From Phaeosaccion multiseriatum (taxonomy: Eukaryota; Protista; Ochrophyta, other classes), in contig OZ218960.1 in assembly GCA_965112735.1 (NCBI GenBank), positions 930,001 to 994,000 on the forward strand: 64,000 nucleotides of DNA, read 5' to 3'. Position 1 is the first letter of the stretch, and each line of letters starts with the position of its first letter. This document shows, in pieces, positions 39,780-42,440 of the stretch. Made by a program: the position numbers and the translations under genes. Under the pieces are notes generated by a model. That model was not told where the DNA came from. It saw only the letters and a list, made by a program, of their open reading frames with translations, and made no database searches.

Positions 39780-40716
39780 AGAGAGAGAGAAGGCAGGGAT
39801 AGTCTGGACTGATTTGGGGCGTGGGGGGGGGCTTGCGAATGCCTTTTTCTTTCCCTTCACCTCCCCCTCTCCCTCTCCCTCTCCCGTTGTAGACTAGTAA
39901 GATCGATTTTTTATCTTTTCGTAGCTAGCGTAGTGTAGTTGTGTGGCACACCTTGGGCGGAGAAAGAGCCTCATCAGCAAAAGCTTGCTTCCACTTTGCC
40001 AAGCTGACTTTCTCCCTCTTCGACAGGTCGACAATTGCCCACCTTTTTTTTTCAATCAATGAATTTCGATTTCATTTCTCAACTCTCCTTGTCTCTGGTT
40101 GGTGTCATCATGTCATGCCTCGAATGCCTTCCTCTCTCCTTGCTGTCTCCTTCGGCGCAATCCACCACAAGCAAATGTCGTCCTTGTGGGGGAGAAAGAT
40201 TAGTGCCACACACAAAAACACACACCAGTCGCCACCAGCCACCACCACCACCAACACACATCAAGGCAAGTGTCAGCGGCGCTTCATAATCACAAGAGAG
40301 AGAGAGAAAACTTTTGAGCTCGGGCGTGGAGCAGGGACCAAAAGTGGAGATGGGGGGTGGCTGGGTGGCTGGTCCTTGATTTCGTCAGCCTGGCGTATGC
40401 ATACCCTTGATCCTTGACTTCGTAAGCGTGGGCGTAGCTAAGCAGAGCGATTTTATAGTTCATTCATTAAATGGGCAATTGCTGAGGATTTCGCCTTGCT
40501 TTGCTCTTGTGGCTGGGGCGCCCCACCCCCCCCATTGCCGCCTTGACTTGCGGTCAGCCAGCAGCTAAGTAGGCTAGAAGCACCGCGGAGCTGCTGGCTG
40601 GGTGGCCTTGCTTCTCAACGTGGATGGCAGTAGACGGCCTTGAGCTCTTGTGGATGACCGTGGATGGATGGATGAAGTCATATCAATGTAGCTATGGATG
40701 AGCTCCTCCTCCCTGC

Positions 40717-40938
40717 TCAGAAGTGGATGGCCTTGTCGTAGCTAGGTTGCCATACACGCCTCCTTGAAGGCTTCGCTCAGCGTGGGGTGTGCGTGGCAGG
40801 ATCGCGCCACATCTTCACTCGAGGCCCCGTACTCCATCGCTAGCACAGCCTCGGCGATGAGCTCTCCCGTGTTTGGGCCCACCATGCATGTGTGGACACC
40901 CAGCCAAGATCTTGTCCGTCTTTTTGTCGGCCAGCACC
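40717..40938 (-). pseudogene. Frameshifted orphan copy of the last DLD exon
   Basis: Homologous to 51278-51485 but broken by several small insertions. The splice acceptor is mutated (CAG to CGG). Confidence 0.9.
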
Positions 40939-41071
40939 CGGAGCGCAAGGGGGGTAGCTAGGGGGAGGGAGGGAGAGAACGACAAGAGAAAGGGCAAGAA
41001 AGAGAACAAAAGTATGAGGAGAGATGAGAGAGGGAGATAAGAGAGAGAGAGATCGGCCCTGGACAAGGTTA

Positions 41072-42440
41072 CAGTATGCGCCGACCATAATCAGTGATCA
41101 GCCCGGCTAGCGCCGGCCGTAGCTAATCGTCAGTGATAAGCCCGGCTAGCGCCGGCCGTAATCAGTAATCAGGCCGGCTGACTGATCGGCTGGTGGCGCA
41201 CGAGCGAGGCGTACTCTAGCTACGGCCGCTCGACTACTCATCGATGTGCTTCGCCAGCAGTCCCTTTTGTACCCTTGAACCCTTTGCGCATAGCCATGTC
41301 GCCCATCGGCCAGTACTGGACAGCCTCACGAAGCAACAAGCAACATGATGCCGAATACGATTTTACATTTGCTTTAGTAGTACTCCTGGCTACTAGCTAA
41401 TGGATGTCTCGATTCGATGCGTGGCTCTTAGCTAGGGTTAGGGTTAGATGCAAACTATGTGACCACGTGACGTGGGCAATTTGCTGCCCTCACATGGCTG
41501 GCGCTCTGACCCGACCCGATGCAGCCTGCCTGGGCAGCCATAACCAATCTCCCTGTGGCACCTCCGTAAGAGGGGGCTTGAGGACCCGAGGTGGTACTCT
41601 GCAGTACAGCCTTCGCCATCACAGAGTATCGTTGTTTGTCCTGCCAGCCACCTGGTCGATATGGCAGACGGTGCACGCTGTGCCAACCCTTCGCTTCTTG
41701 CCCTTCTTGTGCAGCCATGTCTGCGTAGCTCCCAGGACCCCCTCTCGCTCGCACACGGGATGATGTCGTGGTCACCATGGCTCCCACCCTCTGTTGGTGT
41801 AGCGTGGTTCCTTCTTCGTCATCGCTTTCTGAGGACGGCGCTTCTTCTTCTTCGTCTTCCTCTTCTTCCGCGTCGTCGACTGAGCGTAGGCCTCTACTCT
41901 CCCTGTCGATCCTCTCCCTGCTTGCTGAGCGAATTCACGGCATCGCCCATGGCTACATGCTCCTCGTCAGTAACGGTAAAGCCCATCAAGCGCCTGGTCA
42001 GAAGCGACTGGCTGCTGCTCACATTGCTGGTGCTGTCTTTCTTGCTGCTGCCTGCTGCCTGCGCCGCCCTCTTTTTTTTTTTTTTTGTCTGTTGAAAGTC
42101 AGTATTATGTCAATGGCCCAGGCCCACGCAAAAATTCCCGTTTCACGATTGCTATTACCTTGTCCATGCGTCTCAGGCTGGCTTACATTTTCCTTGTCCA
42201 TGCGTGTAGCTACTCCTGTCCTATATGTGGAGAGCAACGTGACTCTTTACATCTCTCCCTTTCTTCACCTCCAACTGTTTCGCCCAGCCATCATGTGGCC
42301 TTGTTCGAACGTCGCAAAAACTTCGTCCCAGCCCCCCCCGGGCCAAGCAAGGGCACGCAAGGGGGCGAGAAACTGAGACTGGCCGGCTGTGCGACCGTGC
42401 CGAGCGACCATAATCAGGAAACAGGCTGGCTCAGCAATCA
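41072..42440 (-). mobile_element. Decayed insertion (probable transposon remnant) with terminal ~32-bp tandem repeats and a PHD-finger relic
   Basis: Not present at the equivalent junction between paralogs 1 and 2. Repeats TAATCAGTGATCAGCCCGGCTAGCGCCGGCCG lie at 41088-41180, and CGACCATAATCAG recurs at ~42405. The minus strand carries broken coding sequence. Confidence 0.55.
41521..41676 (-). pseudogene. Frameshifted PHD finger (C4HC3) coding relic
   Basis: Pieces CTVC, [15 protein letters not shown] and [13 protein letters not shown] occur in different frames. They can be reconstructed to [48 protein letters not shown]. Confidence 0.8.

Follow-up and report, generated by a model that had tools for sequence, protein, structure and literature searches.

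A 3.2-kb spacer of non-functional DNA in the genome of Phaeosaccion multiseriatum (Ochrophyta) bears 4-bp insertions of one stereotyped form, in which a dinucleotide is doubled around a constant GC (XY-GC-XY). We found no description of this insertion class in the literature searched, and the scars match no described mutational process found there. The spacer belongs to a stretch of 64,000 nucleotides, hereafter the window (GenBank assembly GCA_965112735.1, contig OZ218960.1, positions 930,001 to 994,000 of the forward strand; all coordinates below are those of the window). Between 39922 and 42735, 16 XY-GC-XY insertions of +4 bp are each backed by an independent comparator, namely paralogs 1 and 3 of the duplicated gene described below, a neighbouring repeat unit, the reading frame of a PHD finger, or other copies of a miniature inverted-repeat transposable element (MITE). 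One reciprocal event brings the total to 17. A direct target duplication around a short constant insert was seen in all 16 comparator-backed events and in the reciprocal one (Table 1).

The insertions lie amid duplicated genes. Self-BLAST of the window delimits three tandem duplication units (~25.5-33.86, 33.86-42.96, and 42.97-52.5 kb), each with one cysteine-rich repeat gene, and these genes are termed paralogs 1, 2, and 3. Their stop codons, all TAA, are found at 32418, 39777 (39777-39779), and 50344, respectively. When a paralog protein was searched against a protein collection without this genome, there was no match at E <= 1e-20. Taken by themselves, the atlas neighbours of a Glyco_transf_15 ORF would point to an alga that is probably a haptophyte. 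A dihydrolipoamide dehydrogenase (DLD) gene follows paralog 3 on the minus strand; its last exon (51281-51484, minus strand) matches positions 53-109 of the Pfam domain Pyr_redox_dim with an E of 1e-20, and the open reading frame (ORF) preceding this exon matches positions 3-53. The dead DLD copies in paralogs 1 and 2 comprise the last exon only. In paralog 2, the frame of the dead exon is broken at 40739 (TAGCTA), 40884 (ATGCAT plus TG), and 40901 (CAGCCA), and the event at 40955 (TAGCTA plus GG) sits just outside the exon, in the former intron. Since the DLD exon is intact in paralog 3, where it is conserved and translatable and can serve as the reference, the insertion-bearing state of paralog 2 is the derived one.

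We aligned the flank of paralog 2 (39781-41030) with those of paralog 1 (32421-33755) and paralog 3 (50347-51570) by MAFFT, and separately with that of paralog 3 by a global pairwise method. Both alignments yielded eleven +4 insertions unique to paralog 2, each of which is a dinucleotide doubled around GC; the one at 40169 is probable. An earlier note on this DNA, prepared from the sequence alone, had reported such stereotyped insertions relative to the intact copy, the same event between tandem units at 41120, three events breaking a PHD relic, and a reciprocal TGGCTGG at 32952 and 50883; the present analysis bears out all four observations and extends the catalogue to 16. The unit adjoining 41120 reads GGCCGTA/ATCAG (the slash marks the insertion point) and has no GCTA. 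In the PHD relic, the ORF of which is broken three times within 120 bp, the event at 41526 reads CTGCCT (AGGCAG on the minus strand), and taking out four bases per event brings back the Cys4-His-Cys3 spacing and the terminal ...GDWLCPGC, bar one 1-bp frameshift. The reciprocal event was recovered in the alignments. One event, CA-GC-CA at 42730-42735 inside the MITE, is newly added: the copy here reads CCCA-GCCA-CTGGCTGG, while the other family copies in the contigs of sequencing runs X1, X3, X4, and X5 read CCCA-CTGGCTGG.

The doubled dinucleotide was TG/CA in nine of the 17 events, TA in five, and AT, AA, and AG in one each, TG/CA and TA being flexible pyrimidine-purine (YR) steps. G precedes the dinucleotide in 12 of the 17 events and follows it in 12 of the 17. 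When the paralog 3 sequence was used as a proxy for the pre-insertion sites, GTAG, GTAA, and GTGG together made up 39 of the 2206 oriented positions (1.8%), yet they account for eight of the eleven events (p = 1.5e-12). GTAG was struck at three of its seven sites, and CTAG, GTAC, GTGT, CTGG, and ATGG were never struck. As the central GC is palindromic, the rule is identical on both strands, with one 3' G gained per broken end. Formally, this can be written either as a 2-nt stagger with one end-derived nucleotide per side or as a 4-nt stagger in which the outer positions are overwritten. Amid the scars, CACA near 40291 and TGTG at 40890 are plain duplications of 2 bp, likewise at YR steps, and both resemble alternative outcomes of the 2-nt stagger. 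No XY-G-XY or XY-C-XY product was seen among the events.

Several other anatomies were tried on the individual events. XY-GC-XY describes 16 of the 16 comparator-backed events, four of which are incompatible with a 3-bp duplication plus C; at 40435, for instance, such a duplication does not fit because the next base is A. A related model, in which a 3-bp target-site duplication (TSD) is joined by a single P nucleotide (NNG-C-NNG), breaks down at 40435, 41120, 41535, and 40169. A hairpin (P-nucleotide) footprint fails at the same four sites, which read TAGCTAA (40435 and 41120), TGGCTGC (41535), and AAGCAAA (40169); the hairpin model would turn TA into TATA, not TAGCTA. Templated insertion of the kind attributed to DNA polymerase theta was rejected as a general cause, the longest nearby junction matches being mostly other events of the same class. 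Two further insertions restricted to paralog 2 do look templated: 5 bp at 40541 (40541-40549) create a new copy of CCTTGACTT with a source at 40412, 130 bp upstream, and a 33-39-bp filler of GTGGATG-like motifs takes the place of TTTT at 40664-40700. We regard these two as polymerase theta-like repair scars within the same block.

Replication slippage, the birth of tetranucleotide microsatellites, or micro-conversion from the TGGCTGG-rich coding repeats would be the conventional explanation of such insertions, and the earlier note had already judged simple slippage inadequate. Exact tandem duplications do exist at 39922 (TAGC TAGC), 40884 (CATG CATG), and 41526 (CAGG CAGG), short (XYGC)n arrays are present at 21603, 22597, 22786, and 51585, and TGGCTG is common in the coding repeats of the paralogs. 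The three sites are, however, the only exact tandem duplications among the events, and at least 12 events arose where paralogs 1 and 3 have no pre-existing GC on which to slip. Neither the G-T-R-G target nor the regional confinement described below is predicted by slippage, and no nearby template for the TAGCTA class was found except the other events. Since no more than 3-4 events can be ascribed to slippage or tandem duplication, which the alignments largely refute, we consider this group of explanations extremely improbable.

A 4-nt stagger is the geometry expected of misrepair of the topoisomerase II (Top2) type: a 5' stagger over N-X-Y-N would be filled in, and the protein-linked terminal nucleotides would be replaced to give N-X-Y-G/C-X-Y-N. 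This model accounts for the net gain of exactly 4 bp; the rule that the outer positions become G and C reproduces 17 of the 17 events with any flanking base, and the two plain 2-bp duplications would also be in line with it. The products known for Top2 are exact duplications, though, and only 3-4 of the 17 events here are exact. We know of no mechanism that would replace the terminal nucleotides with a fixed base, C insertion of the Rev1 type would yield XY-CG-XY, and the sparing of the flanks of paralogs 1 and 3 would be left unexplained. Trapped Top2 has been reported to cause 2-4-bp duplications with hotspots that depend on non-homologous end joining (10.1101/2020.05.03.075358; PMC8795545), but in view of the above we regard a Top2-type origin of the scars as very improbable.

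The insertions are real germline or clonal events. Contigs of runs X1, X3, and X4 match the window without gaps over 40128-40795, 40989-41178, and 41222-41568, at a uniform, single-copy depth of about 100 (X1), 550 (X3), and 70 (X4), and no alternative allele is listed over these stretches. The earlier note had proposed to look for the insertions in reads, and most of them are present in these contigs. The exception is the event at 39922, for which the contigs carry at double depth the form leaving out the four bases, i.e., the two-copy form of paralogs 1 and 3; this is the form expected from bubble popping, given that more than 31 bp on both sides are shared without a difference by paralog 2 and the other two. 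The three runs derive from one sample, probably the source of the assembly itself; a consensus artefact is thereby excluded, whereas some peculiarity of the culture might still be involved. X5 is a second sample that contains only high-copy parts of the transposons. An assembly or consensus artefact might be argued from the single sample and from the absence of the 39922 event in the contigs. However, it is unlikely, since contigs of three runs reproduce most events without gaps and at single-copy depth. Besides, the events are sequence-specific and occur in one of three near-identical paralogs, and the event at 42730 contrasts with other family copies within the same runs. We therefore rank an artefact as the least probable of the explanations considered.

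The scars are confined to the spacer. Ten of the 12 copies of TAGCTA in the window are located in this spacer, which makes up 5% of the window (binomial p = 6e-12). Markov models predict ~2-3 copies per window, and the 61 kb outside the block contain two, where about 2-3 would be expected. The general pattern XYGCXY has a density of 18.2 per kb in 39780-42964 versus 7.2 per kb in the rest of the window. Among the three flanks, the densities are 18.5 per kb in paralog 2, 9.0 per kb in paralog 1, and 10.7 per kb in paralog 3, and the excess in paralog 2 equals the mapped insertions. The transposon part of the spacer (41024-42964), where a comparator is mostly lacking, has a density of 18.0 per kb, and extrapolation from the XYGCXY density suggests a block total of roughly 30 events. 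In the 1.24-kb flank of paralog 2, about 12 XY-GC-XY insertions are found against 19 substitutions of mixed type, with no excess of transitions among the latter.

The homologous and equally non-functional flank of paralog 1 has no event of its own: of its 39 target sites 0-1 were struck, whereas paralog 2 was struck at 8 of 39 (Fisher p = 0.005 without the shared event and 0.03 with it). In the flank of paralog 3, 0-1 target sites were struck, and in an upstream pair of sequences (U2/U3, 97% identical) none of 37. The aligned coding parts of the paralogs have no XY-GC-XY indel, in agreement with the earlier note, which had seen none in the adjacent coding exons. Selection can account for the lack of events in coding DNA, but not for their lack in the flank of paralog 1. 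The spacer of paralog 2 is set apart by a nest of DNA-transposon material, 1.9 kb long, which comprises an element with a TAATCAG array, the PHD relic, and the MITE with its 6-bp TSD, and which is itself struck. The MITE must have inserted before at least one of the events, because that event sits inside it. The PHD relic is approximately single-copy by k-mer depth; repetitiveness alone is therefore not the trigger.

Because the scars are limited to one 3.2-kb, transposon-filled spacer, the responsible agent appears to have acted repeatedly and locally. We tentatively favour, at somewhat less than even confidence, repeated local hit-and-run cleavage, or insertion and excision over very short distances, by a putative transposase or nuclease that came from the transposon nest or was attracted to it. 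A break, or the strand transfer of a transposase, would occur with a 2-nt stagger across a T-R step, usually inside G-T-R-G, and fill-in of both 5' overhangs would duplicate the dinucleotide. One extra G would be added to each 3' end, and joining would create the palindromic centre G/C, i.e., XY-GC-XY. Were the ends to carry self-complementary 5'-GC-3' overhangs, re-ligation would give a single stereotyped product; an element with 5'-GC ends, the non-transferred strand of which is cut two nucleotides inside, would leave such overhangs. Selection would have purged events from adjacent coding and promoter DNA. The YR-step targets, the preference for G-T-R-G, the transposon nest, and the read-backed events support this local-transposase reading. 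As a precedent, excision of Mariner and Stowaway elements leaves 2-bp TSDs plus bases of the element ends (PMC4561436).

A series of observations weighs against the local transposase. A search of the window for perfect terminal inverted repeats (TIRs) with a seed of 10-11 bp, G-starting arms, and identical flanking dinucleotides returned only low-complexity and repeat noise, and it yielded no candidate with a 2-bp TSD and ends of the form G...C or GC...GC. Neither an occupied site nor a heterogeneous series of footprints was seen. The targets are mostly not TA (5 of 17 are TA). G is favoured on both sides of the dinucleotide, while a symmetric transposase dimer should give G...C; weak evidence of the same asymmetry is that GTAG was struck at 3 of 7 sites versus 0 of 12 for GTAC and CTAG together (p = 0.04). 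Finally, ~16-30 cycles of insertion and excision would be required in 3.2 kb, which is far more local than any local hopping that is, to our knowledge, documented. The suggestion of the earlier note that the scars are dense excision footprints of a locally hopping cut-and-paste transposon, composed of a TSD plus terminal or hairpin-derived bases, thus survives in part: the anatomy fits, but no such element was found in the window, the targets are mostly TG/CA, and the hairpin variant was rejected.

The 159-bp stretch 41340-41498 was considered as a donor, since GC is found at both ends, but it was rejected: the dinucleotides on its two sides do not match, a TIR is missing, and the contigs do not resolve its joint. 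Contigs of the three runs join 41339 directly to 41499, omitting these 159 bp, and may represent a copy of the element without the segment.

Ordinary excision footprints of a genome-wide cut-and-paste family, with a 2-bp TSD and G...C ends, could have accumulated in neutral DNA and would have the same anatomy as in the local-transposase reading; a mariner-like family with relaxed target choice or an ISL2EU/PIF-like family may be imagined. In its favour, the haptophyte Tisochrysis lutea has active Tc1-mariner and Harbinger elements (PMC10138859), and Sleeping Beauty is capable of infrequent insertion at sites other than TA (PMC5801840). We nevertheless regard such a family as improbable, because its footprints would not stay within 3.2 kb. 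TAGCTA is not in excess outside the block, the neutral flank of paralog 1 is not struck, and no such element was found in the window.

Another possibility, which we hold to be unlikely but deserving of serious consideration, dispenses with an element: a nuclease preferring G-T-R-G, either of the host or selfish, would cut repeatedly within a marked region, and a particular mode of end joining would heal each break with +4. The mark might be, e.g., a silenced state of transposon-bearing chromatin, reaching some 1 kb beyond it into the flanking DNA. Such targeting would agree with the sharp regional confinement (18 versus 7 XYGCXY per kb, with 0-1 of 39 sites struck in the flank of paralog 1 and 0 of 37 in U2/U3), with an insertion rate comparable to that of substitutions (about 12 versus 19 in 1.24 kb), with the three breaks in 120 bp of the PHD ORF and the hit in the MITE copy, and with the failure to find a donor in the window. 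Non-templated additions should vary, however, yet the XY-G-XY and XY-C-XY products are missing, and we know of no nuclease or repair route that yields a constant GC filler. The process may amount to an undescribed insertional hypermutation that leaves ~1 scar per 100-200 bp in transposon-bearing or silenced DNA and its flanks, a frameshifting genome defence akin to repeat-induced point mutation (RIP), and this we regard as possible rather than probable. Duplicated DNA as such is not the target, as the dead copy in paralog 1 is spared and the approximately single-copy PHD relic is struck. The proposal of the earlier note that an analogue of RIP acts on silenced duplicates is accordingly unsupported as worded, and only a form of it centred on the transposon-bearing spacer is retained here.

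Table 1. Scars of the XY-GC-XY class, candidates, and reference features in the window.
Feature	Coordinates	Strand	Remarks
Affected block (whole spacer)	39780-42964		Paralog 2 stop codon to start of duplication unit 3 (42965)
TA-GC-TA insertion	39922-39927	+	Not in paralogs 1 and 3; alternatively a TAGC tandem duplication
Probable AA-GC-AA insertion	40169-40174	+	Ambiguous alignment (+CAA and +T); all three paralogs differ
CA-GC-CA insertion (TG-GC-TG on minus strand)	40236-40241	-	Alignments; X1 contig across without gap
Two TG-GC-TG insertions, at 40358 and 40366	40358-40371	+	8 bp apart in GGGGTGGGTGG; alignments; X1 contig, 0 gaps
TA-GC-TA insertion at GTA/AGC	40435-40440	+	Alignments; X3 and X4 contigs, 0 gaps
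TG-GC-TG insertion	40510-40515	+	Alignments; contigs across, 0 gaps
Dead last DLD exon, paralog 2	40717-40939	-	Translation shifts frame at each insertion
TAGCTA insertions	40739; 40955 (with extra GG)		Paralog 2 only (alignments)
ATGCAT insertion with extra TG	40884		Paralog 2 only (alignments)
CAGCCA insertion	40901		Paralog 2 only (alignments)
TA-GC-TA insertion in TAATCAG/GC-palindrome tandem array	41120-41125	+	Neighbouring unit; X1 contig, 0 gaps
PHD-finger relic	41500-41690	-	Three +4 hexamers (41526, 41535, 41645) and one 1-bp frameshift
High-copy MITE, TCGG...CCGA ends	42446-42898		6-bp TSD AGGCCG at 42440-42445 and 42899-42904
Reciprocal TG-GC-TG	32952-32957 (paralog 1); 50883-50888 (paralog 3)	+	Missing from paralog 2
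Candidate TA-GC-TA without comparator	40689-40694 (+); also 41217, 41394, 41429, 42207		Members of the TAGCTA cluster
Intact last DLD exon, paralog 3	51278-51486	-	Polarity reference; translatable

Some additional features of the spacer and its surroundings are recorded here. The MITE appears intact and sits inside the TAATCAG array of another element; its TIRs (~23 bp) are imperfect and its 6-bp TSD is perfect. Its depth, 70-200 times that of single-copy sequence, suggests about 70-200 copies in the genome, and a search of metagenome contigs with its TIR for further copies gave 0 matches. A 12-bp inverted repeat (CGGCCGTAGCTA at 41114-41125 and TAGCTACGGCCG at 41217-41228) has TAGCTA in each arm, reflecting either two independent events at CGGCCGTA sites or an event older than the inverted duplication. 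An interstitial telomere-like sequence, TAGGGTTAGGGTTAG, occupies 41433-41447 inside a transposon relic, directly after a candidate TA-GC-TA. Short (XYGC)n arrays (TTGCTTGCTT, ATGCATGCAT, CAGCCAGCCA, and ATGCATGCATGC) were found at 21130-21160, 21603-21612, 22597-22606, 22786-22795, and 51585-51598; they have no comparator and may be repeated events at the same site or ordinary tetranucleotide repeats. A 10-bp motif, GGCAGTGGAT, occurs 14 times in both orientations and partly in tandem (5405-5500, 7050-7349, 9201-9701, and 12124-12182), and the related GTGGATGGCAGT is present in the flanks of the paralogs. The dead DLD exon of paralog 1 (33503-33755) and the live exon of paralog 3 (51323-51575) are 100% identical over 253 bp, and the upstream flank of paralog 1 is the most diverged of the three; this is a mosaic created by gene conversion. 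Paralog 1 alone has a fold-back element (a long palindrome with CTGTGA...TCACAG ends) at 33111-33272, without counterpart in paralogs 2 and 3.

If the scars are footprints, they would record a cut-and-paste activity that has so far gone unrecognised, with G...C ends, unusually short-range movement, and a 2-bp target other than TA, and XY-GC-XY at G-T-R-G could serve as a signature of where it was once active among algal genomes. Should the scars be independent of any element, they would represent a novel mutational signature, perhaps even a novel genome defence, the product of which is unambiguous and can be counted wherever transposon copies are aligned. Either way, the common attribution of short indels in dead DNA to slippage fails here; the block gained more than half as many +4 insertions as substitutions.

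Among the known systems, Tc1 elements leave TACATA or TATGTA as footprints. The scars resemble those of the Tc1/mariner/Stowaway elements in the 2-bp target duplication, the short constant filler, the small net gain, and, if the overhangs pair, the stereotyped product (PMC4561436). In contrast to those footprints, TA is outnumbered by TG/CA among the dinucleotides duplicated in the scars described here, which further include AT, AA, and AG; their filler is GC, no matching element was found in the window, and the scars crowd into 3.2 kb rather than lying dispersed. The Top2-associated duplications (yeast top2-F1025Y,R1128G; human TOP2A K743N, ID17) share with them the gain of +4 or +2, the fill-in of overhangs, end joining, and hotspots (10.1101/2020.05.03.075358; PMC8795545), but the known Top2 products repeat their template exactly and in tandem, within AT-rich contexts, whereas the present scars always have a central GC and prefer G-rich sites. 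The hairpin footprints of hAT, Transib, and V(D)J recombination likewise consist of short palindromic additions at a rejoined break; there, P nucleotides complement the adjacent flanking base, whereas the GC here is constant. Fungal RIP differs in introducing C-to-T transitions, in recognising repeats, and in striking all copies, while the process in P. multiseriatum introduced +4 insertions, struck one of three copies, and also struck approximately single-copy DNA. Nevertheless, the two are alike in being dense, stereotyped, and regional, and in destroying the ORFs of transposons and duplicates at a rate that rivals or exceeds that of substitution.

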